Under the pieces are notes generated by a model. It saw nothing but the letters and a program-made list of their open reading frames with translations. It had not been told where the DNA came from and made no database searches. Positions 1 to 19,002 of a stretch of 64,000 nucleotides of DNA are shown here, in pieces. The first letter of the stretch is position 1. The number at the start of each line of letters is the position of its first letter. The DNA is taken from assembly GCA_965112735.1 (NCBI GenBank), contig OZ218965.1:1178001-1242000 (forward strand). Reading direction: 5' to 3'. Source of the stretch: Phaeosaccion multiseriatum. Taxonomy: Eukaryota; Protista; Ochrophyta, other classes. Position numbers and translations under genes: made by a program.

Positions 1-916
1 TCCCTGCCCCTTTCCCCGCCTCTGCCTGCCCCCTCTTGCCCCCACCCCACAGCCCGTCGCCCAGACCGACCCAGCCCCCTTTGGCTGCTCCACTCGAGCA
101 AGACGGTGGTGCTTCAGGGATGATGCAAGCACGGGGTACACACGTCAGATGGGGGCAGCGCGGGCGGGGCCGCTGAGCGAAGCCGCAGAGGAGATGAAGA
201 AGGACGGGAGGGGGAAGGAGGAGGCGGAGAGGAAGAGGAATGAGGTCCAGGATGAGACTGAGGCGGAGGGGGGACAGAAGGGGAAGGCAGTCTGTTTGAT
301 AGGGGTGTAATTTTTGCAAAGTGGAGTTGAGGTGTTCCTTCTACTGTGAGTGTGAATGGTGGTGCTGCCCCACTATTGCTATTGCATGCGCTCCTCCAGA
401 GCATTTGGAGTGGAGCAGGGCAGAGCATTGCGGCCCTGGCTTAGGGGAAGGCGCCCACCCGCCCGTGCAGCAGCGATGCAAGCGGAATGGGCCAGGACTG
501 GTGGGGGCATGCGTGATCAGGGTTCAGGCAATGAAGAGCTCACACAATAGACTTCCTGCTTGGCGCTCTCCGCGGGGGGTTGAATAAGGGCAGCAGTAGA
601 AGATGAGAAAGGGGGAGGGCGTTTCAAATATGTCATTGGAGAGGGGTGCGTGGCACTGCCGTTTCGCGGCGAGAGGCGTGTGAGGCTCTTCTCAGAGTTT
701 CGGAGAAAGGAAGCCGGTGCTAGGCCCAAAGTCGACATATCTATCTATACATGCGTTATGCTATGGTACGCACTGATTCGGCTGGAAGAAGAAGCACACT
801 TCTCACAAAGACATCCCAAAGAGAGAGGGGCTGAAGTGAAGCCCCTTTCTATGGCACCGTGTGCGAAACAGAACGATGCTTGACGCAGGAGGGGCCACGC
901 TGTCTGTCCTGGTCAC

Positions 917-2008
917 TCAGTCCTCGCAGTCGCAGGGGTGACCATTGGCGTGCACCCACTGCTTCATCTCCTCAAGGGCGGCAGAGGCAATATCCCATCT
1001 AAGATCGCCATATTCGTTTTTCACGACTTGTGGGCATGCCCTCCTATCCCAGGGACACATGACCTCCTCCGAGCGGAGCCACTTCAGGACAGAGAGGCTC
1101 TCACCGCCATAAACTGCTGCAGTAGTGACATATTCATCCCACGTGCACAGCTCCCGTGCGTTTGCATGCAGCCACTGCAGCACTTCCAGATTGCCTTGCT
1201 CGGCCGCCCAGAAAGCCCCCCACCTCCACCCGCTGTAGTTACCTGCCGCCTCCATCTTAGCTCTGACCTTGGGATGGTGCACAAGCATGTCCAACACGCT
1301 GAAATGCCCCGCCTGCACAGCCCCCTCCAACATATCAAATTGGGGAGGGCCCCCAAACTCGTCGGACAGCAGCCACGTAAGAACCTCCACATGGCCGCAC
1401 TTGCCAGCTTCGCGACAAGTAAGGCTCTGATCCCACGGGCACCGCTCCTTGTTGGGCAGGTCCTCCGCTCGCAGCCATTGGAGGATGCTCAGTGCGTGCT
1501 TTTCATTCCTCACCGCAACCATGCATATGGTCAAACCCCAGGTACACCCCATGCTGTGAAGAGCCTTGCAAATACGCAAGTCTCCGTACTGTGCCGCAGC
1601 CTCAAAAGTGTTCACACTCAGCTCATACCCGTACTTCCTGGCCCACCTCAAACGCTCCTCAGACTCAACCACACTCCTGATCCGGGTTGTCTTGGCCCAA
1701 TGAAGACGTCTGTAGTGCTCCTTCCACTCCTTGCTCACCGCCGCTACGAACAAGTCGTGCCCACCACCAGTCCACTCCATCACGCTACGGAGCATTACAG
1801 CCTGGGCCAGAGCCTCTTCACAAGCTTCGAAGGTCTGAGCATCGCTTCCCTCGCCTCCAGCAAGGGCAGCGGGACCGGGAGTAGGTGTTGAAGCGGCACC
1901 GGCACCACCGCTTCCATGCAAAGTCAGACATACTTCCCCTGCCGAGGAGTCGGTGGGTGGAGCTGGCTGGAGCCTTTTGCCGCCATGCTTTCGGCTCGGT
2001 CCGTCCAT
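917..2008 (-). CDS. Array gene A1: F-box-like N-terminal motif + ankyrin-type (CPW) repeats, 363 aa
   Basis: Uninterrupted ORF MDGPSRK...HPCDCED. F-box-like LRSVMEWTGGGHDLFVAAVSKEWKEHY. Repeats of the form AAxxGxLEVLxWL...CPWD. Confidence 0.9.
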   Translation of the reverse strand: MDGPSRKHGGKRLQPAPPTDSSAGEVCLTLHGSGGAGAASTPTPGPAALAGGEGSDAQTFEACEEALAQAVMLRSVMEWTGGGHDLFVAAVSKEWKEHYRRLHWAKTTRIRSVVESEERLRWARKYGYELSVNTFEAAAQYGDLRICKALHSMGCTWGLTICMVAVRNEKHALSILQWLRAEDLPNKERCPWDQSLTCREAGKCGHVEVLTWLLSDEFGGPPQFDMLEGAVQAGHFSVLDMLVHHPKVRAKMEAAGNYSGWRWGAFWAAEQGNLEVLQWLHANARELCTWDEYVTTAAVYGGESLSVLKWLRSEEVMCPWDRRACPQVVKNEYGDLRWDIASAALEEMKQWVHANGHPCDCED

Positions 2009-2611
2009 GTCTTCCGCGGTCCCACTCTAGATGACTGCTTGACACTTATGATGCGCGGTGCAGGGCAGGTGATGGGGGGGAAGAAGCCCTTTAGCTTTCC
2101 TCAGCGAAGCCTGGCATGACGAGAGAAGGGAAGGGGCAGGAGGAACGACAGGACGGAAATGACACGCGGTGTGAGGAAAAGGCGGCATCGGTACCTCCCC
2201 TGCTGTTGGGCCTTTGCCGACACCCCCCCCTGCCGAGACCCCCCCCCCGAAGAGCCGAAGAGTGTGGAGGGCAAGTTTACTTCAATGGAGTCGATCACCA
2301 TCTCCCCGCACGGCCTCGACTGCTCTAAGCCTCCTCCAGCCTGCACTCTTCAGCGCCACACTCCTACCTGCAGCTTGGTGGAAAATGGTGCGTGGAGAGT
2401 GAGTTGAGAGGGATACAAGGCAAGTTGGTCGTTCAGCGTCGGCCTGGTAGTCGAGCTCTGTGGTCGCCACACCACCCGAAGAGACGGAGCGAGCGCGGGG
2501 CCGGCGCAAACAAGGCCGCCATTGCTGCATGATGGCACAGAGAAGGTGGGGCCATTAGTCACTTCTTTGAAGCGCTGCAGATACTTTGGCGAAGTGGGCA
2601 ACACACACGCC
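2009..2611. promoter_or_regulatory. Putative bidirectional promoter/5'UTR region between A and B start codons (repeated in every unit)
   Basis: ~600 bp between divergent ATGs, conserved in all four units. Contains a candidate minus-strand GT..AG intron at 2111-2194 with a pyrimidine-rich acceptor. Confidence 0.55.
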
Positions 2612-3634
2612 ATGGCAGAGGCAGAGGATACCTCCAAGAGGCAGCGCCTGGGCACGGAGGAGGGTGTGACAAGTTATACCGCGGAGACTGCCGAGGGCGA
2701 AGGTGCTGTGCAGGAGACGTACGTGGCCAGTGCCAAGGCCCTGGGAATGGAGGAGGTCCTGCAGAAAATCATGCCGCTTGTGGGGAAGGGCCGCCACGTC
2801 TTCACCGCCACCGTATGTAGGGAATGGAAAGAGCACTACAGCATGGCCCACCCTTCAGCCGAGACTTCCCTTCCAAGCGTGGTGGAGTCTGTCAGGTGCT
2901 TGCAGTGGGCCAAGGAGAAATGTGGGTACGAGCTGAGTGTGGGCACTTTCCGAGCGGCGGCAGAGTACGGAGATGTGAGCGTGTGCGAGGAGCTGCTTCA
3001 CCGCATGCACTGCCCCTGGGCTACAATGGCCTGTAGGGCGGCTGTGAGGAATGCTAGGCATGGACTGCGTATTCTCAAGTGGCTGCGATCCGAGGACCTC
3101 CCCAACAAGGAGCAAGGTCCTTGGTCACAGGATTGGGTCGGGGACGAAGCTGGCTGGTGCGGCAATGTGGAGGTTCTTACGTGGCTGCTGTCCGACGAGT
3201 TTGAGGGCCCTCCTCAATGCATTATGTGGGTGGGGGCTGTGCGGGCGGGGCGCATTCGCGTGTTGGACATGCTTGTGCACCATCCGAAGGTCAGAGCTGA
3301 GATGGAGGCGGCAGGGGACCTCAGCGGGTGGAGGAATGGGGCTAAATGGGCGGCCGAGGAAGGCAATCTGGAAGTGCTGCAGTGGCTGCATGCAAACGCA
3401 CGGGAGCTGTGCAGGTAGGATGAATATGTCTGTTATGAAGCAGTTTATAGCGGTAAGAGCCTCTCTGTCCTGAAATGGCTCCGCTCGGAGGAGGTCATGT
3501 GTCCCTGGAACGAGTCGGCCTGCCCACAGTACTTTGAAGGAGTGATTCATGGATGGGATATGCCCCCTGCCGCCTTTGAGGAGATGAAGCAGTGGGTGCA
3601 CGACAATGGTAACCCCTGCGACCTCGGGGACTGA
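2612..3634 (+). pseudogene. Array gene B1, ankyrin-type repeat protein with premature stop
   Basis: Colinear with B2 (both 1023 nt), but the conserved TGG (RW DE) is TAG at 3416-3418. The downstream frame is intact to TGA at 3632-3634. Confidence 0.85.
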
Positions 3635-4756
3635 CTGGCAGGAAGCGTTTCGAGACGGAGGCAGGACGGGTAGGAAGGGAGGCGGCCCTGAGAAGGCGGC
3701 GACAGCCTCTTCGAATAGGGGGGGCAACAAGTCGAGGTGAGCGGGGCGGATGGGAGTGCTCTCTGGCTTGGCGGTGCTTTTGAGGTTACCGAATGCCTGT
3801 CTGCAGCTCCTCCTGCTGCTATCTGTTCTCTGATCCTCTTCCCTGCCCCTTTCCCCGCCTCTGCCTGCCCCCTCTTGCCCCCACCCCACAGCCCGTCGCC
3901 CAGACCGACCCAGCCCCCTTTGGCTGCTCCACTCGAGCAAGACGGTGGTGCTTCAGGGATGATGCAAGCACGGGGTACACACGTCAGATGGGGGCAGCGC
4001 GGGCGGGGCAGCTGAGCGAAGCCGCTGAGGAGATGAAGAAGGACAGGAGGGGGAAGGAGGAGGCGGAGAGGAAGAGGAATGAGGTCCAGGGTAAGACTGG
4101 GGTGGAGGGGGGACAGAAGAGGAAGGCAGTCTGTATGATAGGGGTGTTATTTTTGCAAAGTGGAGTTGAGGTGTTCCTTCTACTGTGAGTGTGAGTGGTG
4201 GTGCTGCCCCACTATTGCTATTGCATGCGCTCCTCCAGAGCGTTTGGGAGTGGAACAGGGCAGAGCATTGCGGCCCTGGCTTTGGGGAAGGCGCCCACCC
4301 GCCCGTGCAGAGCAGCGATGCAAGCGGAATGGGCCAGGCCTTGTGAGGGCATGCGTGATTAGGGTTAAGGCAATGAAGAGCTCACACCATAGACTTCCTG
4401 CTTGGCGCTCTCCGCGGGGGGTTGAGGAAAGCAACGCAGTAAGGAAGGGGAGGAGGAGGAGGAGGAGAGGGCGATCCAAAGCCATTGGCTGATATCAGTG
4501 CAAGTACTGCCGTTACGCGGCGAGAGGCGTGTGAGGCTCTTCTCAGCGTTTCGGAGAAAGGAAGCCGGTGCTAGACCCAAAGTCGACATATCTATCTATA
4601 CATTCGTTATGCTACGGTATGCACTGATTCGGCTGGGAGAAGAAGCACACTTCTCACAAAGAGAGACGGGCTGAAGTGAAGCCCCTTTCTATGGCACCGT
4701 GTGCGAAACAAGACGGTGCTTGACGCAGGAGGGGCCACGCCGTCTGCCGCGGTCAC

Positions 4757-5845
4757 TCAGTCCTCGCACTCGCAGGGGTGACCATTGGCGTGCACCCACT
4801 GCTTCATCTCCTCAAAGGCGGCAGGGGGCATATCCCAGTAATCATCTAATCCGTCTTGAAGGTACTGTGGGCATGCCGACTCGTCCCAGGGACACATGAC
4901 CTCCTCCGAGCGGAGCCACTTCAGGACAGAGAGGCTCCCACCCCTACAAACTGCTTCACAAGAGACATATTCATCCCACCTGCACAGCTCCCGTGCGTTT
5001 GCATGGAGCCACTGCAGCACTTCCAGATTGCCTTCCTCGGCCGCCCATTTAGCCCCATTCCTCCACCCGCTGAGGTCCCCTGCCGCCTCCATCTCAACTC
5101 TGACCTTGGGATGGTGCACAAGCATGTCCAACACGCGAATGCGCCCCGCCTGCACAGCCCCCTCCCACATATAATATTGAGGAGGGCCCTCAAACTCGTC
5201 GGACAGCAGCCACGTAAGAACCTCCACATGGCCGCACTTGCCAGCTTCGCCACAAATGAAGTGCTGGGCCCACGGGCACTGCTCCTTGTTGGGCAGGTCC
5301 TCCGCTCGCAGCCATTGGAGGATGCTCAGTGCATGCCTTTCATTCCTCACCGCAACTATGCATACGGTCAAACCCCAGGCACACCCCATGCTGTGAAGAG
5401 CCTTGCAAATACGCAAGTCTCCGTACTGTGCCGCAGCCTCAAAAGTCTTCACACTCAGCTCATACCCGTACTTCCTGGCCCACCTCAAACACTCCTCAGA
5501 CTCAACCACACTCCTGATCCGGGTTGTCTTGGCCGGATGAAGACGTCTGTAGTGCTCCTTCCACTCCTTGCTCACCGCCGCTACGAACAAGTGGTGGCCC
5601 CCACCAGTCCACTCCATCACGCTACTGAGCATTACAGCCTGGGCCAGAGCCTCTTCACAAGCTTCGAAGGTCTGAGTATCGCTTCCCTCGCCTCCAGCAA
5701 GGGCAGCGGGACCGGGAGAAGCCGCCACAGCGGCACCGGCACCACCGCCTCCATGCAAAGTCAGACATACTTCCCCTGCCGAGGAGTCGGTGGGTGGAGC
5801 TGGCTGGAGCGTTTTGCCGCCATGCTTTCGGCTCGGTCCGTCCAT
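4757..5845 (-). CDS. Array gene A2: F-box-like + ankyrin-type repeats, 362 aa
   Basis: ATG (CAT 5843-5845) MDGPSRK; paralogous to A1; intact ORF. Confidence 0.9.
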   Translation of the reverse strand: MDGPSRKHGGKTLQPAPPTDSSAGEVCLTLHGGGGAGAAVAASPGPAALAGGEGSDTQTFEACEEALAQAVMLSSVMEWTGGGHHLFVAAVSKEWKEHYRRLHPAKTTRIRSVVESEECLRWARKYGYELSVKTFEAAAQYGDLRICKALHSMGCAWGLTVCIVAVRNERHALSILQWLRAEDLPNKEQCPWAQHFICGEAGKCGHVEVLTWLLSDEFEGPPQYYMWEGAVQAGRIRVLDMLVHHPKVRVEMEAAGDLSGWRNGAKWAAEEGNLEVLQWLHANARELCRWDEYVSCEAVCRGGSLSVLKWLRSEEVMCPWDESACPQYLQDGLDDYWDMPPAAFEEMKQWVHANGHPCECED

Positions 5846-6442
5846 GTCTTCTGCGGTCCCACTCTGGATGACTGCTTGGCACTTATGATGTGTCGCGCTG
5901 GGCAGGTGATGGGGGGGAAGAAGCCCTTTAGCTTTCCTCAGCGAAGCCTGGTACGACGAGAGAAGGGAAGGGGGAGGGGGAAAGACAGGACGGAAATGAC
6001 ACGCAGTGTGAGGAAAAGGCGGCATCGATAACCCCCCTGCTGTTGGGCCTTTGCCGAGACCCCCCCCCGGAAGAGCCGAAGCGTGTGGAGGGCAAGTTTA
6101 CTTCGATGGAGTCGATCACCATCTCCCCGCACGGTCTCGACTGCTCCAAGCCTCCTCCAGCCTGCACTCTTCAGCGCCACACTCCTACCTGCTGCTTGGT
6201 CGAAGAGGAACGGAGGTGGTGCGTGGAGAGTGAGTTGAGAGGGATACAAGGCAAGTTGGTCGTTCAGCGTCGGCCTGGTAGTCGAGCTCTGTGGTCGCCA
6301 CACCACCCGAAGAGACGGAGCGAGCGCGGGGCCGGCGCAAACAAGGCCGCCATTGCTGCATGATGGCACAGAGAAGGTGGGGCCATTAGTCACTTCTTTG
6401 AAGCGCTGCAGATACTCTGGCGAAGTGGGCAACACACACGCC

Positions 6443-7465
6443 ATGGCAGAGGCAGAGGATGCCTCCAAGAGGCAGCGCCTGGGCACGGAGGAAGGTGTGA
6501 CAAGTTATACCGCGGAGACTGCCGAGGGCGAAGGTGCTGTGCAGGAGACGTACGTGGCCAGTGCCAAGGCCCTGGGAATGGAGGAGGTCCTGCAGAAAAT
6601 CATGCCCCTTGTGGGGAAGGGCCGCCACGTCTTCACCGCCACGGTATGTAGGGAATGGAAAGAGCACTACAGCGTGGCCCACCCTTCAGCCGAGACTTCC
6701 CTTCCAAGCGTGGTGGAGTCTGTCAGGTGCTTGCAGTGGGCCAAGGAGAAATGTGGGTACGAGCTGAGTGTGGGCACTTTCAGAGCGGCGGCAGAGTACG
6801 GAGATGTGAGCGTGTGCGAGGAGCTGCTTCACCGCATGCACTGCCCCTGGGATACAACGGTCTGTAGGGTGGCTGTGAGGAATGCTAGGCATGGACTGCG
6901 TATTCTCAAGTGGCTGCGATCCGAGGACCTCCCCAACAAGGAGCAAGGTCCTTGGTCACAGGATGACGTCGGGGACGAAGCTGGCGAGTGCGGCAATGTC
7001 GAGGTTCTTACGTGGCTGCTGTCCGACGAGTTTGAGGGCCCTCTTGAATTCATTTTGTGGGAGGACGCTGTAAAGGCGGGGCGCATTCTCGCGTTGGACA
7101 TGCTTGTGCACCATCCCAAGGTCAGAGCTGAGATGGAGGCGGCTGAGGGGGACAGCGAGTGGTGGGACGGGGCTATATGGGCGGCCGCGGAAGGCAATCT
7201 GGAAGTGCTGCAGTGGCTGCATGCAAACGCACGGGAGCTGTGCAGGTGGGATGAAGGTGTCTCTAGTGCAGCAGTTTATGGCGGTATGAGCCTCTCTGTC
7301 CTGAAATGGCTCCGCTCGGAGGAGGTCATGTGTCCCTGGAACGAGTCGGCCTGCCCACAGTACTTTGAAGGAGTGATTCATGGATGGGATATGCCCCCTG
7401 CCGCCTTTGAGGAGATGAAGCAGTGGGTGCACGACAATGGTAACCCCTGCGACCTCGGGGACTGA
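6443..7465 (+). CDS. Array gene B2: F-box-like + ankyrin-type repeats, 340 aa
   Basis: ATG MAEAEDASKRQR. F-box-like MEEVLQKIMPLVGKGRHVFTATVCREWKEHY. AAxxGNLEVLQWL and CPW repeats. Confidence 0.9.
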   Translation: MAEAEDASKRQRLGTEEGVTSYTAETAEGEGAVQETYVASAKALGMEEVLQKIMPLVGKGRHVFTATVCREWKEHYSVAHPSAETSLPSVVESVRCLQWAKEKCGYELSVGTFRAAAEYGDVSVCEELLHRMHCPWDTTVCRVAVRNARHGLRILKWLRSEDLPNKEQGPWSQDDVGDEAGECGNVEVLTWLLSDEFEGPLEFILWEDAVKAGRILALDMLVHHPKVRAEMEAAEGDSEWWDGAIWAAAEGNLEVLQWLHANARELCRWDEGVSSAAVYGGMSLSVLKWLRSEEVMCPWNESACPQYFEGVIHGWDMPPAAFEEMKQWVHDNGNPCDLGD

Positions 7466-8581
7466 CTGGCAGGAAGCGTTTCGAGACGGAGGCAGGACGG
7501 GTAGGAAGGGAGGCGGCCCTGAGAAGGCGGCGACAGCCTCTTCGAATAGGGGGGGCAACAAGTCGAGGTGAGCGGGGCAGATGGGAGTGCTCTCTGGCTT
7601 GGCGGTGCTTTTGAGGTTACCGAATGCCCATCTGTTGCTTGTTCTGGTGCTACCTGTTCTCTGATCCTCTTCACTGCCCCCTTCCCCGCCTCTGCCTGCC
7701 CCCTCTTTCCCCCACCCCACAGCCCGTCACCCAGACCGACCCAGCCCCCTTTGGCTGCTCCACTCGAGCAAGACGGTGGTGCTTCAGGGATGATGCAAGC
7801 ACGGGGTACACACGTCAGATGGGGGCAGCGCGGGCGGGGCAGCTGAGCGAAGCCGCTGAGGAGATGAAGAAGGACAGGAGGGGGAAGGAGGAGGCGGAGA
7901 GGAAGAGGAATGAGGTCCTGGATAAGAATGAGGCGGAGGGGGGACAGAAGGGGAAGGCTGTCTGTATGATAGGGGTGTTGTTTTTGCAAAGTGGAGTTGA
8001 GGTGTTCCTTCTACTGTGAGTGTGAATGTTGGTGCTGCCCCACTATTGCTATTGCATGCGCTCCTCCAGAGCGTTTGGGAGTGGAGCAGGGCAGAGCGTT
8101 GCGGCCCTGGCTTAGGGGAAGGCGCCCACCCACCCGTGCAGAGCAGCGAGGCAAGCGGAATGGGCCAGGCCTTGTGGGGGCATGCGTGATTAGGGTTAAG
8201 GCAATGAAGAGCTCACACAATAGACTTCCTGCTTGGCGCTCTCCGCGGGGGGTTGAGGAAAGCAACGCAGTAAGGAAGGGGAGGAGGAGGAGAGGGCGAT
8301 CCAAAGCCATTGGCTGACATCAGTGCAAGTACTGCCGTTACGCGGCGAGAGGCGTGTGAGGCTCTTCTCAGCGTTTCGGAGAAAGGAAGCCGGTGCTAGG
8401 CCCAAAGTCGACATATCTATCTATACATGCGTTATGCTATGGTACGCACTGATTCGGCTGGAAGAAGAAGCACACTTCTTACAAAGAGAGACGGGCTGAA
8501 GTGAAGCCCCTTTCTATGGCACCGTGTGCGAAACAAGACGGTGCTTTACCCAGGAGGGGCCGCGATGTCTGCCCTGGTCAC

Positions 8582-9673
8582 TCAGTCCTCGCACTCGCAG
8601 GGGTGACCATTGGCGTGCACCCACTGCTTCATCTCCTCAAAGGCGGCAGGGGGCATATCCCATACTCTTGCGCCATGTGCGTTTTTCACGACTTGTGGGC
8701 ATGCGCACTCGTCCCAGGGACACATGACCTCCTCCGAGCGGAGCCACTTCAGGACAGAGAGGCTCCCACCCCTACAAACTGCTTCACAAGAGACATATTC
8801 ATCCCACCTGCACAGCTCCCGTGCGTTTGCATGGAGCCACTGCAGCACTTCCAGATTGCCTTCCTCGGCCGCCCAGACAGCCCCATTCCTCCACCCGCTG
8901 TAGTTACCTGCCGCCTCCATCTCAGCTCTGACCTTCGGATGGTGCACAAGCATGTCCAACACGCGAATGCGGCCCGCTCGCACAGCCCCCACCCACATAC
9001 AGGCTTCAGGAGGGCCCTCAAACTCGTCGGACAGCAGCCACGTAAGAACCTCCACATGGCCGCACTTGCCAGCTTTGCCACAAATCAGGGTATGATCCCA
9101 CGGGGACCGCTCCTTGTTGGGCAGGTCCTCCGCTCGCAGCCATTGGAGGATGCTCAGTGCGTGCCTTTCATTCCTCACCGCAGCTATGCATACGGCCCAA
9201 CCCCAGGCACACCCCATGCTGTGAAGAGCCTTGCAAATACGCAAGTCTCCGTACTGTGCCGCAGCCTCAAAAGTCTTCACACTCAGCTCATACCCGTACT
9301 TCCTGGCCCACCTCAAACGCTCCTCAGACTCAACTACACTCCTGATCCGGGTTGTCTTGGCCGGATGAAGACGTCTGTAGTGCTCCTCCCACTCCTTGCT
9401 CACCGCCGCTACGAACAAGTCGTGGCCACCACCAGTCCACTCCATCACGCTACTGAGCAAGACAGCCTGGGCCAGAGCCTCTTCACAAGCTTCGAAGGTC
9501 TGAGTATCGCTTCCCTCGCCTCCAGCAAGGGCAGCGGGACCGGGAGAAGCCGCCACAGCGGCACCGGCACCACCGCCTCCATGCAAAGTCAGACATACTT
9601 CCCCTGCCGAGGAGTCGGTGGGTGGAGCTGGCTGGAGCCTTTTGCCGCCATGCTTTCGGCTCGGTCCGTCCAT
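8582..9673 (-). CDS. Array gene A3: F-box-like + ankyrin-type repeats, 363 aa
   Basis: Intact ORF paralogous to A1/A2. Confidence 0.9.
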   Translation of the reverse strand: MDGPSRKHGGKRLQPAPPTDSSAGEVCLTLHGGGGAGAAVAASPGPAALAGGEGSDTQTFEACEEALAQAVLLSSVMEWTGGGHDLFVAAVSKEWEEHYRRLHPAKTTRIRSVVESEERLRWARKYGYELSVKTFEAAAQYGDLRICKALHSMGCAWGWAVCIAAVRNERHALSILQWLRAEDLPNKERSPWDHTLICGKAGKCGHVEVLTWLLSDEFEGPPEACMWVGAVRAGRIRVLDMLVHHPKVRAEMEAAGNYSGWRNGAVWAAEEGNLEVLQWLHANARELCRWDEYVSCEAVCRGGSLSVLKWLRSEEVMCPWDECACPQVVKNAHGARVWDMPPAAFEEMKQWVHANGHPCECED

Positions 9674-10265
9674 GTCTTCCGCGGTCCCACTCTAGATGAC
9701 TGCTTGACACTTATGATGTGCGGTGAGGGGCAGGTGATGGGGGGGAAGAAGCCCTTTAGCTTTCCTCAGCGAAGCCTGGTACGACGAGAGAAAGGAAGGG
9801 GGAGGGGGATTGACAGGAGGAAATGACACGCAGTGTGAGGAAAAGGCGGCATCGGTACCTCCCCTGCTGTTGGGCCTTTGCCGAGACTCCCCCCCCGAAG
9901 AGCCGAAGAGTGTGGAGGGCAAGTTTACTTCGATGGAGTCGATCACCATCTCCCCGCACGGCCTCGACTGCTCTAAGCCTCCTCCAGCCTGCACTCTTCA
10001 GTGCCACACTCCTACCTGCTGCTTGGTCGAAGAGGAACGGAGGTGGTGCGTGGAGAGTGAGTTGAGAGGGATACAAGGCAAGTTGGTCGTTCAGCGTCGG
10101 CCTGGTAGTCGAGCTCTGTAGTCGCCACACGACCCGAAGAGACGGAGCGCGGGGCCGGCGCAAACAAGGCCGCCATTGCTGCATGATGGCACAGAGAAGG
10201 TGGGGCCATTAGTCATTTCTTTGAAGCGCTGCAGATACTCTGGCGAAGTGGGCAACACACACGCC

Positions 10266-11291
10266 ATGGCAGAGGCAGAGGATGCCTCCAAGAGTCAGCG
10301 CCTGGGCACGGAGGAGGGTGTGACAAGTTATACCGCGGAGACTGCCGAGGGCGAAGGTGCTGTGCAGGAGACGTACGTGGCCAGTGCCAAGGCCCTGGGA
10401 ATGGAGGAGGTCCTGCAGAAAATCATGCCGCTTGTGGGGAAGGGCCGCCACGTCTTCACCGCCACCGTATGTAGGGAATGGAAAGAGCACTACAGCATGG
10501 CCCACCCTTCAGCCGAGACTTCCCTTCCAAGCGTGGTGGAGTCTGTCAGGTGCTTGCAGTGGGCCAAGGAGAAATGTGGGTACGAGCTGAGTGTGGGCAC
10601 TTCCAGAGCGGCGGCAGAGTACGGAGATGTGAGCGTGTGCGAGGAGCTGCTTCACCGCTTGCACTGCCCCTGGGATACAATGGCCTGTAGGGCGGCTGTG
10701 AGGAATACTAGGCATGGACTGCGTATTCTCAAGTGGCTGCGATCCGAGGACCTCCCCAACAAGGAGCAAGGTCCTTGGTCACAGTATAACGTCGGGGACG
10801 AAGCTGGCTGGTGCGGCAATGTGGAGGTTCTTACGTGGCTGCTGTCCGACGAGTTTGAGGGCCCTCCTCAATGCATTATGTGGGTGGGGGCTGTGCGGGC
10901 GGGGCGCATTCGCGCGTTGGACATGCTTGTGCACCATCCGAAGTTCAGAGCAGAGATGGAGGCGGCAGGGGACCTCAGCGGGTGGAGGAATGGGGCTATA
11001 TGGGCGGCCGAGCACGGCAATCTGGAAGTGCTGCAGTGGCTGCATGCAAACGCACGGGAGCTGTGCAGGTGGGATGAAGATGTCTGTTATGAAGCAGTTT
11101 TACGCGGGAAGAGCCTCCCTGTCCTGAAATGGCTCCGCTCGGAGGAGGTCATGTGTCCCTGGGACGAGTCGGCATGCCCACAGTTCCATGAAGACGAAGA
11201 TGGTGATGACTGGGTTATGCCCCCTGCCGCCTTTGAGGAGATGAAGCAGTGGGTGCACGACAATGGTCACCCCTGCGAGTGCGAGGACTGA
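10266..11291 (+). CDS. Array gene B3: F-box-like + ankyrin-type repeats, 341 aa
   Basis: Intact ORF from MAEAED; ends with the A-type tail HPCECED. Confidence 0.9.
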   Translation: MAEAEDASKSQRLGTEEGVTSYTAETAEGEGAVQETYVASAKALGMEEVLQKIMPLVGKGRHVFTATVCREWKEHYSMAHPSAETSLPSVVESVRCLQWAKEKCGYELSVGTSRAAAEYGDVSVCEELLHRLHCPWDTMACRAAVRNTRHGLRILKWLRSEDLPNKEQGPWSQYNVGDEAGWCGNVEVLTWLLSDEFEGPPQCIMWVGAVRAGRIRALDMLVHHPKFRAEMEAAGDLSGWRNGAIWAAEHGNLEVLQWLHANARELCRWDEDVCYEAVLRGKSLPVLKWLRSEEVMCPWDESACPQFHEDEDGDDWVMPPAAFEEMKQWVHDNGHPCECED

Positions 11292-12393
11292 CTGGCAGGA
11301 AGCGTTTCGAGACGGAGGCAGGACGGGTAGGAAGGGAGGCGGCCCTGAGAAGGCGGCGACAACCTCTTCGAATAGGGGGGGCAACAAGTCGAGGTGAGCG
11401 GGGCGGATGGGAGTGCTCTCTGGCTTGGCGGTGCTTTTGAGGTTACCGAATGCCCATCTGCTGCTTCTCCTGCTGCTGTCTGTTCTCTGATCCTCTTCAC
11501 TGCCCCTTTCCCCGCCTCTGCCTGCCCCCTCTTGCCCCGACCCCACAGCCCGTCACCCAGACCGACCCAGCCCCCTTTGGCTGCTCCACTCGAGCAAGAC
11601 GGTGGTGCTTCAGGGATGATGCAAGCACGGGGTACACACGTCAGATGGGGGCAGCGCGGGCGGGACAGCTGAGCGCAGCCGCAGAGGAGATGAAGAAGGA
11701 CAGGAGGGGGAAGGAGGAGGCGGAGAGGAAGAGGAATGAGGTCCAGGATAAGACTGAGGCGGAGGGGGGACAGAAGGGGAAGGCTGTCTGTACGATAGGG
11801 TTGTTGTTTTTGCAAAGTGGAGTTGGGGGTGGGTGAATGGTGGTGGTGCCCCACTATTGCTATTGCATGCGCTCCTCCAGAGCGTTTGGGAGTGGAGCAG
11901 AGCAGAGCATTGCGGCCCTGGCTTTGGGGAAGGCGCCCACCCGCCCGTGCAGAGCAGCGAGGCAAGCGGAATGGGCCAGGCCTTGTGGGGGCAGGCGTGA
12001 TTAGGGTTAAGGCAATGAAGAGCTCACACAATAGACTTCCTGCTTGGCTCTCTCCGCGGGGGGGTTGAGGAAAGCAACGCAGTAAGGGAGGGGAGGAGGA
12101 GGAGAGGGCGATCCAAAGCCATTGGCTGATATCAGTGCAAGTACTGCCGTTACGCGGCGAGAGGCGTGTGAGGCTCTTCTCAGCGTTTCGGAGAAAGGAA
12201 GCCGGTGCTAGGCCCAAAGTCGACATATCTATCTATACATTCGTTATGCTATGGTACGCACTGATTCGGCTGGAAGAAAAAGCACACTTCTCACAAAGAG
12301 AGACGGGCTGAAGTGAAGCCCCTTTCTATGGCACCGTGTGCGAAACAAGACGATGCTTGACACAGGAGGGGCCGCGCTGTCTGCCCTGGTCAC

Positions 12394-13482
12394 TCAGTCC
12401 TCGCACTCGCAGGGGTGACCATTGGCGTGCACCCACTGCTTCATCTCCTCAAAGGCGGCAGGGGGCATATCCCATCCACCACCGCTTCTTTCTTTAATGT
12501 CCTGCGGGCATGCCGACTTGTCCCAGGGACACATGACCTCCTCCGAGCGGAGCCACTTCAGGACAGAGAGGCTCTTACCGCCATAAACTGCTTCAGCACA
12601 GAGATATTCATCCCACCTGCACAGCTCGCGTGCGTTTGCATGCAGCCACTGAAGCACTTCCAGATTGCCTTCCTGGGCCGCCCAGCTAGCCCCCCACGTC
12701 CACCCGCCTTGTCCCTCAGCAGCCTCCATCTCAGCTCTGACCTTGGGATGGTGCACAAGCATGTCCAACGCTCGAATATGCCCCGCCAGCACAGCCTCCG
12801 TCCATATATCAAATTGAGGAGGGCCCTCAAACTCGTCGGACAGCAGCCACGTAAGAACCTCCACATGGCCGCACTTGCCAGCTTCGAGACAAATTAAGTG
12901 CTGATCCCACGGGCACCGCTCCTCGTTGGGCAGGTCCTCCGCTCGCAGCCATTGGAGGATGCTCAGTGCGTGCCTTTCATTCCGCACCGCCACCATGGAT
13001 ACGGCCCAACCCCAGGCACACCCCATGCTGTGAAGAGCCTTGCAAATAAGCAAGTCTCCGTACTGTGCCGCAGCCTCAAAAGTCTTCACACTCAGCTCAT
13101 ACCCGTACTTCCTGGCCCACCTCAAACGCTCCTCAGACTCAAACATACTCCTGATCCGGGTTGTCTTGGCCGGATGAAGACGTCTGTAGTGCTCCTCCCA
13201 CTCCTTGCTCACCGCCGCTACGAACAAGTCGTGGCCCCCACCAGTCCACTCCATCACGCTACTGAGCATTACAGACTGGGCCAGAGCCTCTTCACAAGCT
13301 TCGAAGGTCTGAGCATCGCTTCCCTCGCCTCCAGCAAGTGCAGCGGGACCGGGAGTAGGTGTTAAAGCGGCACCGGCACCACCGCTTCCATGCAAAGTCA
13401 GACATACTTCCCCTGCCGAGGAGTCGGTGGGTGGAGCTGGCTGGAGCCTTTTGCCGCCATGCTTTCGGCTCGGTCCGTCCAT
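12394..13482 (-). CDS. Array gene A4: F-box-like + ankyrin-type repeats, 362 aa
   Basis: Intact ORF paralogous to A1-A3. Confidence 0.9.
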   Translation of the reverse strand: MDGPSRKHGGKRLQPAPPTDSSAGEVCLTLHGSGGAGAALTPTPGPAALAGGEGSDAQTFEACEEALAQSVMLSSVMEWTGGGHDLFVAAVSKEWEEHYRRLHPAKTTRIRSMFESEERLRWARKYGYELSVKTFEAAAQYGDLLICKALHSMGCAWGWAVSMVAVRNERHALSILQWLRAEDLPNEERCPWDQHLICLEAGKCGHVEVLTWLLSDEFEGPPQFDIWTEAVLAGHIRALDMLVHHPKVRAEMEAAEGQGGWTWGASWAAQEGNLEVLQWLHANARELCRWDEYLCAEAVYGGKSLSVLKWLRSEEVMCPWDKSACPQDIKERSGGGWDMPPAAFEEMKQWVHANGHPCECED

Positions 13483-14072
13483 GTCTTCCGCGGTCCCACT
13501 CTAGATGACTGCTTGACACTTATGATGCGCGGTGCAGGGCAGGTGATGGGGGGGAAGAAGCCCTTTGGCTTTCCTCAGCGAAGCCTGGTACGACGAGAGA
13601 AAGGAAGGGGGAGGGGGATTGACAGGAGGAAATGACACGCAGTGTGAGGAAAAGGCGGCATCGGTACCTCCCCTGCTGTTGGGCCTTTGCCGAGACCCCC
13701 CCCCGAAGAGCCGAAGAGTGTGGAGGGCAAGTTGACTTCGATGGACTCGATCACCATCTCCCAGCACGGCCTCGACTGCTCTAAGCCTCCTCCAGCCTGC
13801 ACTCTTCAGTGCCACACTCCTACCTGCAGCTTGGTGGAAAATGGTGCGTGGAGAGTGAGTTGAGAGGGATACAAGGCAAGTTGGTCGTTCAGCGTCGGCC
13901 TGGTAGTGGACATCTGTAGTCGCCACACGACCCGAAGAGACGGAGCGAGTCGAGGCAGCGGGGCCGGCGCAAACAAGGCCGCCATTGCTGCATGATGGCA
14001 CAGAGAAGGTGGGGCTATTAGTCACTTCTTTGAAGCGCTGCAGATACTCTGGCGAAGTGGGCAACACACGCC

Positions 14073-15101
14073 ATGGCAGAGGCAGAGGATGCCTCCAAGA
14101 GGCAGCGCCTGGGCACGGAGGAAGGTGTGACAAGTTATACCGCGGAGACTGCCGAGGAAGAAGGTGCTGTGCAGGAGACGTACGTGGCCAGTGCCAAGGC
14201 CCTGGGAATGGAGGAGGTCCTGCAGAAAATCATGCCCCTTGTGGGGAAGGGCCGCCACGTCTTCACCGCCACGGTATGTAGGGAATGGAAAGAGCACTAC
14301 AGCATGGCCCACCCTTCAGCCGAGACTTCCCTTCCAAGCGTGGTGGAGTCTGTCAGGTGCTTGCAGTGGGCCAAGGAGAAATGTGGGTACGAGCTGAGTG
14401 TGGGCACTTCCAGAGCGGCGGCAGAGTACGGAGATGTGAGCGTGTGCGAGGAGCTGCTTCACCGCTTGCACTGCCCCTGGGATACAATGGCCTGTAGGGC
14501 GGCTGTGAGGAATACTAGGCATGGACTGCGTATTCTCAAGTGGCTGCGATCCGAGGACCTCCCCAACAAGGAGCAAGGTCCTTGGTCACAGTGTAACGTC
14601 GGGGACGAAGCTGGCAAGTGCGGCAATGTGGAGGTTCTTACGTGGCTGCTGTCCGACGAGTTTGAGGGCCCTCCTCAACATATTATGTGGTCGGGGGCTG
14701 TAGACGGGGGGCGCATTCGCGCGTTGGACATGCTTGTGCACCATCCCAAGGTCAGAGCTGAGATGGAGGCGGCAGGTAACTCCAGCGGGTGGAGGGATGG
14801 GGCTTTCTGGGCGGCCGCGAAAGGCAATCTGGAAGTGCTGCAGTGGCTGCATGCAAACGCACGGGAGCTGTGCAGGTGGGATGAAGATGTCTGTTTTGAA
14901 GCAGTTTTCCACGGGAGGAGCCTCTCTGTCCTGAAGTGGCTCCGCTCGGAGGAGGTCATGTGTCCCTGGGACGAGTGGGCATGCCCGCAGTACATTAAAG
15001 ACAGAGGCGATGGTGGATGGGATATGCACCCTGCCGCTTTTGAGAAGATGAAGCAGTGGGTGCACGCCAATGGTCAACACCCTTGCGACTGCGAGGACTG
15101 A
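14073..15101 (+). CDS. Array gene B4: F-box-like + ankyrin-type repeats, 342 aa
   Basis: Intact ORF from MAEAED; last gene of the array. Confidence 0.9.
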   Translation: MAEAEDASKRQRLGTEEGVTSYTAETAEEEGAVQETYVASAKALGMEEVLQKIMPLVGKGRHVFTATVCREWKEHYSMAHPSAETSLPSVVESVRCLQWAKEKCGYELSVGTSRAAAEYGDVSVCEELLHRLHCPWDTMACRAAVRNTRHGLRILKWLRSEDLPNKEQGPWSQCNVGDEAGKCGNVEVLTWLLSDEFEGPPQHIMWSGAVDGGRIRALDMLVHHPKVRAEMEAAGNSSGWRDGAFWAAAKGNLEVLQWLHANARELCRWDEDVCFEAVFHGRSLSVLKWLRSEEVMCPWDEWACPQYIKDRGDGGWDMHPAAFEKMKQWVHANGQHPCDCED

Positions 15102-16274: not shown

Positions 16275-16670
16275 TCAACCGTCAAGGAAAGGACCGGCGT
16301 TGAGCTCCTCCGGCACGCTCAGGTCCCACGGGTTGGCGAAGCTCGGACCGTCGTCCTCCGCCCACTCCACCTCCACACACTCCCACGGCATGAAGCCCGA
16401 AGCCTCATCCACCGCCTTGACACCGCACAACTGCCCTGCAAAGAGTCGCTCCGACCCCATTGTGGGGACACTGTGCACACCGCCATCTTCTTGGAAGAGC
16501 GAGGCCGAGGCGTTTCCTTCGAGCCGGAAGGGCCGCCGTACAGCCTGGGCATACAGAGCAGATCGGACCACAAAGACGGGTGCATCGCCCACCAGTCGCA
16601 TCGACACGTCCAGAGTGGTGTCTGCAAAGTAGTCGGGGGGGAGGGGGGCAGGGCCCATTGCGGCTGCGGA

Positions 16671-16706
<36 letters not shown>

Positions 16707-19002
16707 TTGTTGTTGCTGTTGCTGCTGTTGAAGGATTTGCTGCTGCTGCCGGAGGATTTGCTGCTGCTGCTGGAGAATCTGTTGCTGCTGCTGTTGCTGC
16801 TGGAGGAGCCACTGGCTCTGTGGATGCTGCGGATTCTGCTGAAGCACCAACTGCTGCTGCTGCTGCTGCTCGATCTGCCTCTGAAGCTCGTCCTGCTGTT
16901 GTTGGAGCAGCGCCTGGGCAGCCGTGCCCGGAGATGCCGGCACTGGTGCTTCTACTGCTGCTGCTGTACCACCAACTGCTGCTGCTGCTGCTCCTCCCGG
17001 CCCTTCGGCAAGACTTGCCCCCCCCCCTGGCTGGGCCGGCTTCTCAACCGCCCCTCCTTCGTCAGCCTCCCGCTTGACTCCTCCACTCCCCGCATCGGCA
17101 CCCCCCCCCCCCTTGAGTGCCTTTGTCCTCTCCTTCTCCGCCGCTGCTTTGCTCTCCGTCTCTGTCTGGGCGTACACGGGGGTGAGAAGCTTGTCAAAGA
17201 ACACCTCTCGGGCCATTCGCGCCGTTTCCGTCGTCTGAGAAGTGAGCAATGAGCGCGCACACACACACAAACGGGCATATAGATGGGCAGGCACACGGGC
17301 AGACAGAGGCATAAGGGCAGGCACACGGGGTGGGGTCGGACAGGGGGCGGAGCACGGAGAAGCGTGAAGGAGGGGTGAGTACTGCAGCGGGCGCAAACCA
17401 CTCTCTCTCTGCGCTCTCTCTACCTGTCGCAGTGTTGTCTCTTCTCTCTGCCAGTCTCTCTCTGTCACTCTCTCTGTCTCTCTCTGCCTCTCTCTGCCTC
17501 TCTCTGCCTGTCGCTGTGTTGTCTCTTCTCTCTGTTCGTCTCTCTCTCTCTGCCTCTCTCTGCCTCTCTTTGCCTCTCTTCGTCTCTCTCTATCTCTGTT
17601 GCCTCACAGCATGAGGTGAGCACAGCCACCCTCCCCCATGCCGACTCAAAAGGCTCGCTCCGCTTTACTTTGCACCACGCACACTCAATCCCTTCCCCCC
17701 TCGGGTCCGATCGGTCCGAGTGAATGGCCAAGTGCTCCCCTTGTTTCTCTCCTCTCCTTTCTTCCTTAACTTTACGTAAGGCCTTCCATACTCCTCTCCC
17801 GCTCCCCTGCCTTGTGAAAGGCCGAGCTTCTTTCCGTCTCTCTCCAGTCTTGTGCAATGCCAAGCCTCCTCTGCTGCCTTTCACTTGCTTCATCTTACCG
17901 CGTTTCCGAGAGGGTCGCTCGCCCACATATCCACGCCCTCGTCGTGCTCCCCGCCGCCTTCGGAGAGAAAAGACAAGGGAGGGAGGGAGGGAGAGAGAGA
18001 GGGAGGGAAGGAGAGAGGGATGTGGATAAGGGAGAGATAAGAGAGAGAGGGAGAGAGAGCGAGCGAGAGAAAAAAGGAGACAGGCGTCGTACAGGGTGAG
18101 AGGGACGAAAGACACATATCAAGAGAGAGGCAGGCGAGCGAGAGAGAGAAGAGGAGAAGGGGAAGAGAAGCACAGCATCCGGCGACGGGCGGGAGAAGGG
18201 GCGAAGGGACGGTTCACGCCGCTCAGAGAGACAGTCAGAGAGACACTCAGAGAGGCAGTCAGAGAGGCAGTCAGAGAGACACTCAGAGAGGCAGTCAGAG
18301 AGGCAGTCAGAGAGGCAGTCAGAGAGACACTCAGAGAGACACTCAGAGAGGCAGTCAGAGAGACGCTCAGAGAGACACTCAGAGAGGCAGTCAGAGAGAC
18401 ACTCAGAGAGGCAGTCAGAAGGACACTCAGAGAGACACTCAGAGGGACACTCAGAGAGGCAGTCAGAGAGACACTCAGAGAGGCAGTCAGAGAGGCAGTC
18501 AGAGAGACACTCAGAGAGGCAGTCAGAAGGACACTCAGAGAGACACTCAGAGAGGCGGATGTACAAATGAGTGCACGCGTGCACGAAAGGAAAGCCCCAT
18601 ACTCCTCTAAACCCAAACCGCCCCCCGGGGAGACTTGAGCCTCAGATTGAGCCCTGACACTCTACGACAGTGCCTCACCCGTTCGCACGCCGAAGGGGTT
18701 GAAGCCTTGATTCGCTTCGTGCAAGCCTGCCGCCCCTAAAGCCGCCCCCATGTGCTGCTGCCAGAGCGACTCGAGACGGTGTGCATCTGCCTGGGCGGTC
18801 TCCAGAGAGGCCGCCATGTGGGGGTCGTCAAGCATGGTGACACCCCTACGCACCACTTCCTCGGCCAGGGGGATGAGCTGGGGGAAGCGGCCGGCGCAGT
18901 ACAGAGCGCAGTTCGAGGCGATCATCTGCAGGCATATCGGCCACCAGGGGCAGGCAGGCAGGCAGGCATATGGGTAGGCCGGCAGGCAGGCAGGCAGGCA
19001 AG

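Follow-up and report, generated by a model that had tools for sequence, protein, structure and literature searches.

Introduction

NLR-type genes of fungi, among them the HNWD family of Podospora, carry ANK, TPR or WD repeats that combine concerted evolution with diversifying selection, and repeats are exchanged both within and between members that have different N-terminal parts (PMC4986451). The hypervariable positions of these genes are positively selected and lie on the binding face, which in ANK repeats consists of the inner helices and the hairpin or loop (PMC4986451). Here we describe a tandem array of ankyrin-repeat genes in the stramenopile alga Phaeosaccion multiseriatum. The stretch analysed, termed "the window" throughout, is 64,000 nt of contig C16 (C16:1178001-1242000), and the array is described from its positions 1-15101. 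Its genes belong to two classes of ancient separation, A and B, and we consider it likely that recurrent non-crossover gene conversion, together with diversifying selection, keeps a single pool of back halves shared between them.

Partial parallels come from several other systems. Plant resistance-gene clusters, for example the chimeric "type I" genes of lettuce RGC2, are tandem and mosaic, with short exchanges in ligand-binding repeats and positive selection on solvent-exposed residues; plant clusters, however, are not known to be built of two ancient head-to-head classes with only the 3′ half in common. Lamprey VLR, VSG, var, pilE/pilS and vlsE rely on an incomplete or single expressed gene and silent partial donors, and change within an individual or a clone. 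In the palindromes of the human Y chromosome, arm-to-arm non-crossover conversion keeps inverted copies alike and leaves the spacer uninverted. Within the stramenopiles, Ectocarpus has large and fast-evolving families of repeat proteins with diversifying selection on the repeats, for which a process resembling adaptive immunity has been suggested (PMC3341825). There, each repeat is an exon of its own and whole exons are shuffled (PMC3341825).

Two Gene Classes in Front and One Pool Behind

The array consists of five copies of a 3.83-kb unit (period 3807-3839 nt); units 1-4 lie inside the window, and unit 0, with genes A0 and B0, lies directly upstream. In each unit two intronless ankyrin-repeat genes of 340-363 aa stand head to head, A encoded by the minus and B by the plus strand, with a spacer of ~600 nt within the pair and a tail-to-tail spacer of ~1.1 kb to the next unit. 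Two sister arrays occupy the same contig, namely array 2, with seven genes, ~90 kb away and inverted as a whole, and array 3, a single pair ~250 kb away. The 19 genes of the three arrays were aligned by codon, and codon numbers refer to this alignment.

Between A and B, synonymous divergence (dS) is ~2.0, and thus saturated, in the front part, where the classes are only ~58-65% identical, and 0.145 in the back part after codon 210-219, as against 0.137 among A genes and 0.118 among B genes there. Fixed A/B differences number 171 before codon 187 and 13 in codons 188-210, with none after, and polymorphic sites that have the same alleles in both classes number two before codon 187 and 80 after. 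A and B are ancient paralogues in their front halves and indistinguishable over the last ~165 codons. The class-specific stretch takes up the first ~180-200 codons, and the common pool, about four ankyrin-type repeats plus a cap, extends across all three arrays. A preliminary description of this DNA had the genes diverged in their N-terminal halves and alike from the motif ILxWLRxEDLPNKE to the stop codon; the two-part structure stands, but class-specific sequence runs ~25 codons further, to codon 210. Because the last fixed A/B difference lies at that codon, HV1, the first of the variable blocks (HV1 to HV5), is still class-specific.

Within each class, the silent divergence of the front halves (dS 0.004-0.045) is lower than the mismatch in neighboring non-coding spacers (2-10%), and front halves seem to be either homogenized among copies of the same class or constrained at silent sites. 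At the other end of the protein, the tails of B3 and B4 had been taken as A-type, whereas the HPC[DE]CED tail is common to all family members sampled. A slightly wider form of the C-terminal motif, HPC[DE]C[EQ]D, contains one His and two Cys; of the ~50 family members that were examined, from three contigs, nearly all retain it, and it could be a metal-binding or modification site (positions of the C-terminal motif include 920-940, 3611-3631 and 7442-7462). B1 and B2 alone end in NPCDLGD, with both Cys lost, which is the derived form of the tail.

Genes and Spacers of the Array

The features are listed by window position; "pooled" marks the part of each gene that belongs to the common back-half pool.

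1-916, no strand: tail-to-tail spacer from upstream gene B0 to A1; alike in sequence and orientation to the other tail spacers
917-2008, minus strand: gene A1, class A, ankyrin-repeat protein of 363 aa; pooled 920-1411
2009-2611, no strand: head-to-head spacer common to A1 and B1; same orientation in all units; 0.2-7.7% different from other head spacers
2612-3634, plus strand: gene B1, class B; in-frame TAG at 3416-3418; pooled 3146-3631
3298-3387, plus strand: exact 90-nt tract common to B1 and A2 (5007-5096 in A2, on the other strand), spanning HV3
3635-4756, no strand: tail-to-tail spacer from B1 to A2; identity of 94-95% with the two tail spacers that follow in the array, in the same orientation; without gene fragments
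4757-5845, minus strand: gene A2, 362 aa; pooled 4760-5248
6443-7465, plus strand: gene B2, 340 aa; pooled 6977-7462; 148-nt tract in common with gene Ad of array 2
8582-9673, minus strand: gene A3, 363 aa; pooled 8585-9076; protein taken for the structure model
10266-11291, plus strand: gene B3, 341 aa; pooled 10800-11288; almost the same as upstream B0 from end to end
12394-13482, minus strand: gene A4, 362 aa; pooled 12397-12885
14073-15101, plus strand: gene B4, 342 aa, final gene of the array; pooled 14607-15098; no tail spacer after it
C16:1175021-1176106 (locus L009), upstream of the window: gene A0; in-frame TGA

The head spacer between A1 and B1 presumably acts as a bidirectional promoter. 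Back halves of A and B are inverted repeats of each other, both head-to-head and tail-to-tail, as had been described at a length of ~550 bp; we find 382-645 nt with 84-92% complementarity, and the arms end ~3 nt beyond the stop codon. In-frame stop codons are confined to two genes, the TAG of B1, which is TGG in all other copies, and the TGA of A0, the remaining genes being open. B1 is probably a pseudogene. Both broken genes still have recent tracts in common with intact ones, which indicates that broken copies can be donors or recipients.

Exchange between A and B Genes

The pairwise homoplasy index (PHI) was below that of all 1000 permutations (p ≤ 0.001), for the eight genes of the window as well as for all 19. 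A GENECONV-style test, in which runs of identity at polymorphic sites were compared with 1000 permutations of site order and columns gapped in both genes were ignored, returned 14 globally significant identical tracts (p < 0.05) of 47-180 nt, eight of which link the two classes. The longest significant A/B tract is an exact 155 nt that Ad of array 2 has in common with B1, and since neutral divergence between the arrays is 2-10%, this event must be recent. By both tests, the sharing goes beyond what chance would give. The exact 90-nt tract of B1 and A2, taken alone, fails the corrected test. An earlier version of the test had given 22 "significant" tracts, with A/B scores inflated by the counting of shared gaps and class-specific sites, and was replaced; a version that dropped all gapped columns lost too many sites, and an extension to genes of contigs C12 and C8 was not used, its matches being dominated by a gap-rich stretch of HV5.

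All peptide blocks that had been noted as shared between genes could be followed to the DNA. The block of B1 and A2 shows no difference in 48 nt and lies inside the exact 90-nt tract, and YVSCEAVCRGG shows none in 33 nt between A2 and A3. Equally free of DNA differences are GNYSG and PQVVKN in A1 and A3, as well as the YFEGVIHG and NPCDLGD blocks in B1 and B2. MWVGAVRAG, found in B1, B3 and A3, is the same in B1 and B3 at the DNA level and differs at 2 of 27 nt in A3.

Trees of single blocks, which the preliminary description had expected to be incongruent, resolve A and B as separate groups (support 100/100) for the front part and for HV1. For HV3, HV4 and HV5 the classes are intermingled, with 5-6 class changes required, and the trees conflict with one another. 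The approximately unbiased (AU) test rejects monophyly of A in three of four blocks (HV3, 3e-6; HV4, 0.027; HV5, 0.017). Nearest neighbors shift from block to block: A2, for instance, resembles B1 most in HV3 and B3 most in HV5, and its HV4 is identical to that of A3. A silent-site test, limited to codons whose amino acid never varies so as to tell exchange from convergent selection, found five sites polymorphic in both classes where 1.5 were expected (P = 0.003). Lastly, the head spacers of units 0 and 1 are only 0.2% different and A0 and A1 are identical in HV1, but from HV2 onward the two genes are ~10% different; with a near-identical head region beside them, point mutation is too slow to account for such back halves. 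These results show that sequence has moved repeatedly between A and B over evolutionary time, making mosaics.

Orientation, Partners and Breakpoints

We compared nine head and seven tail spacers, and their orientation is consistent throughout, with none flipped. A crossover between inverted copies would flip the segment between them, so the exchange was non-crossover conversion, and the earlier preference for conversion over inversion is upheld by the consistent spacers. Array 2 has the opposite gene order, for which a crossover flip was considered and ruled out: both of its spacer types are inverted together, and the array was thus inverted as a whole.

Of the 90 A/B pairs that can be formed, 16 are neighbors, but a single one of the eight significant A/B tracts connects such a pair. 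Several of the tracts link arrays 90-270 kb apart. The geometry of inverted neighbors does not drive the exchange.

The four-gamete test gave 21 minimal intervals (minimum number of recombination events, Rm, of 21), 18 of which lie within variable blocks and some of which measure 1 nt, a sign both of recurrent mutation and of breakpoints inside the blocks. Reading Rm as 21 recombination events was rejected, given that most intervals lie within variable blocks. Runs of at least 12 nt that are invariant in all 19 genes number only three (29, 14 and 24 nt). The invariant blocks had been proposed as homology anchors for cassettes. These intervals and runs contradict that idea, and the variable blocks are no discrete cassettes set between such anchors.

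The Same Pattern on a Second Contig

Many head-to-head pairs of the same two classes also occur on contig C8 (1.87-3.0 Mb, loci L048-L059), where at least six a/b pairs are complete and both orientations are found; the pairing of the two classes is old and widespread. In the front part, dS is 2.1 between a and b of C8, 0.62 from C16 A to C8 a and 0.50 from C16 B to C8 b, so that each is nearer its own class. In the C8 tail of 132 codons, a and b have a dS of 0.46, which equals that within classes (0.37-0.47), and the classes are mixed. Pooling of the 3′ part is therefore old and recurrent, and not confined to the C16 array. Over the 38 codons ahead of the tail, the A genes of C16 and A-like genes of C12 are nearer to C8 b (0.55) than to C8 a (0.96), from which it follows that B-type sequence spread further into the A genes of that lineage.

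The wider family comprises more than 385 candidate copies in the 67-Mb genome, and the matches in the genome are nearly all full-length frames. Two near-identical B copies in arrays 2 and 3, Bb (L043:940-1974) and Bx (L033:5677-6708), carry a 9-codon insertion that duplicates an LQWL-type helix at the boundary of front and back, and lack 3-4 codons of HV3. Just past the end of the array, the minus strand at window 16275-17468 holds a long open frame rich in CAG/CTG repeats, with runs of glutamine (alanine or leucine in other frames), and at 17895-18584 a low-complexity tandem repeat with CLSECLSD-type units in one frame.

The Encoded Proteins and Their Variable Sites

Pfam Ank_4 matches A3 with 33.4 bits and B3 with 35.7 bits (cut-off 22.7), and scans of whole proteins found ankyrin models only. 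A profile search of PDB sequences returned DARPin (E = 1e-8) and espin. We also built an AlphaFold (AF2) model of A3 from a 46-sequence family alignment, which is confident over residues 120-360, with a predicted local distance difference test score of 85-97 over 130-330, and unreliable for 1-114. The model has the paired helices typical of ankyrin stacks, and its top structural matches are ankyrin domains (espin, FEM1, ankyrin-B/G and RNase L), with weak scores (E ≥ 0.002; template modeling score 0.45-0.58). In it, each repeat has its variable positions in the loop and the first helix, whereas no second helix varies; published work places the ligand contacts of ankyrin repeats on this loop/first-helix face (PMC4986451).

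In the pooled part, variable codons have a non-synonymous divergence (dN) of 0.26-0.30, a dS of 0.18-0.21 and a dN/dS of about 1.4-1.6, values of which dN and dN/dS are biased upward because these codons were picked by amino-acid variability; framework codons have a dN of 0.011-0.015, a dS of 0.06-0.09 and a dN/dS of 0.12-0.25. Among the 49 most variable codons, 46 differ at two or three positions, and 59 sites are multi-allelic. The ratio of transitions to transversions is 0.91 at variable codons versus 1.30 in spacers. A base-specific mutator of the retroelement or deaminase type was rejected, since all six substitution classes occur at variable codons; this verdict concerns the substitutions, and genes for reverse transcriptase or deaminase were not searched for.

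The N-terminal ~110 residues are conserved within each class, their fold is of low confidence in the model, and the N-terminal parts have no Pfam match. An F-box was considered for them and rejected: six N-terminal parts gave no Pfam F-box match at E ≤ 10, and a profile of 24 such parts found no F-box protein in the PDB at the same limit. The sole hint of an F-box is one atlas cluster in which 21% of members have one. The N-termini are hydrophilic and, judged by eye, have no obvious signal peptide.

A Model for the Shared Pool

Under the explanation we favor, the pool is probably maintained by recurrent non-allelic, non-crossover gene conversion in tracts of about 50-190 nt, with some events of at least 1 kb. 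About 49 codons change fast by recurrent mutation, probably under diversifying selection, at the loop and first helix that form the usual binding face of ankyrin repeats. Upstream, exchange probably halts where the divergence of A and B blocks pairing, given their low identity over the front part, and downstream it probably halts at the stop codon, where homology ends. The data show the exchange itself, how far it reaches, the absence of flips and where the variable codons lie; the repair pathway, the agent of selection and a role of the proteins as a recognition repertoire are inferred from them.

Several points weigh against this explanation. No conversion event was observed directly, and all were deduced from one assembly, on which the long-range correctness of the array and of each mosaic depends, read contigs being 77-532 nt long. 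Monophyly of A is not rejected by HV2 (AU 0.37) or by the whole back part (AU 0.16) when either is taken alone. Many four-gamete violations lie 1-13 nt apart within variable blocks, so that part of the patchwork is recurrent mutation and not exchange. The upward bias in dN and dN/dS given above counts here too, and there is no sign of biased conversion, since GC content at third codon positions does not rise from the front part to the pooled part.

Alternative Explanations

The mosaics might be an artefact of assembly or polishing, in which reads from paralogues were mixed in the consensus. Repeated units 85-99% alike are hard for short-read polishing, and the support from reads is limited to short contigs. 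Raw reads from two studies, labeled with one organism, went into these contigs, which drop rare variants and of which none spans a unit. However, they show no mismatch to the assembly, either over variable blocks or at the stop codon of B1, where the TAG is covered by runs X2 and X5. A contig of run X5 breaks exactly at 3386/3387, the end of the tract shared by B1 and A2, as expected where two sequence contexts diverge. The check for chimeras that had been called for is thus answered in part, at the scale of short contigs. Moreover, six of the eight window genes keep open frames, mosaic partners include genes 90-270 kb away, and a class-mixed back half is also found in the C8 genes, which are too different for an assembler to confuse. 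We hold the artefact to be improbable.

A bolder extension of gene conversion under selection would have a high mitotic rate of conversion, such that clones carry varying repertoires of binding faces in the manner of a var-like family for intracellular recognition, or, in a variant, A and B partners that deliberately draw their binding halves from one pool. On present evidence we give this little credence.

Programmed or high-rate somatic shuffling goes further still: while a clone grows, the cell would draw on paralogues as donors to reconstitute its expressed genes, in the way of lamprey VLR or of var, VSG and pilin, and the preliminary description had indeed proposed a VLR- or antigenic-variation-like mechanism. 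Short and recent tracts (exact over 90-155 nt where neutral divergence is 2-10%), variable codons on the predicted binding face, the very large size of the family and a precedent for such a hypothesis in a brown alga (PMC3341825) all speak for it. On the other hand, all eight window genes carry every repeat and none is an incomplete acceptor; there is no bank of partial cassettes, spacers matching only other spacers and holding no gene fragments. That every pair comes with a head spacer of its own (91-95% alike) speaks against a single site of expression. The hydrophilic N-termini without obvious signal peptide and the lack of a base-specific mutator signature do not fit either, and no minor variants are listed inside the variable blocks, in contigs that cannot show rare ones. 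The same pattern is far older on C8, which implies a slow evolutionary process. Complete genes, separate head spacers and absent donor cassettes leave the proposal unsupported, and we regard somatic shuffling as very improbable.

A single ancestral overwrite of one class's back half before the units were amplified, with no later exchange and with motifs arising by parallel mutation under similar selection, is just as improbable, for although it accommodates an A-B divergence that equals that within classes (as a star-like history gives) and the evident recurrent mutation (multi-allelic sites, 1-nt four-gamete intervals), it is already refuted by the long significant A/B tracts, the distance-dependent incompatibility seen by PHI, the AU rejections and the excess of shared synonymous polymorphisms, and is at odds with blocks identical at synonymous sites too and with A0 and A1, whose head regions are almost identical and whose back halves have diverged.

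Comparison with Known Systems

Gene conversion and diversifying selection acting on two old classes would show how a very large algal ankyrin family builds variety, with separate old fronts and one shared, fast-evolving pool of binding halves. Such a pattern is typical of recognition repertoires that are in conflict with, for instance, viruses or other parasites, and it comes from a lineage whose immune-like systems are barely known. Nature also offers here a clean case of concerted evolution that is partial, its sharp limit lying within the gene, and that is seen twice independently (C16 and C8). The processes are ordinary gene conversion and selection; the data show neither a new molecular mechanism nor an antibody-like shuffling device.

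Among the known systems, the Y-chromosome palindromes have whole arms homogenized between two fixed partners, whereas here only the 3′ ~490 nt are pooled, partners are mostly non-adjacent, and diversity is kept and not erased. With VLR and antigenic variation the array has in common short templated tracts between related repeats that yield new variable combinations on a constant framework, but here every copy is a complete gene. The likeness to Ectocarpus lies in a stramenopile alga with large, fast-evolving repeat families whose repeat domain is under diversifying selection; unlike there, the genes have no introns, and tracts begin and end anywhere, variable blocks included. Tandem clusters, short exchanges in binding repeats, mosaic genes and selection on exposed residues recall RGC2, whose repeats are, however, leucine-rich repeats and come with a signaling domain.

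By analogy, the closest described case is that of the fungal NLR-type repeat genes. The algal genes differ from these in that Pfam scans of whole proteins and N-terminal parts found no NACHT or NB-ARC domain, that the repeats within a gene are not near-identical and vary little in number (gene lengths of 330-363 aa), and that exchange takes place between whole paralogous genes in tandem head-to-head pairs. What they share with the fungal genes is distinct front halves joined to a pooled ankyrin half, whose variable sites occupy the loop and the first helix.

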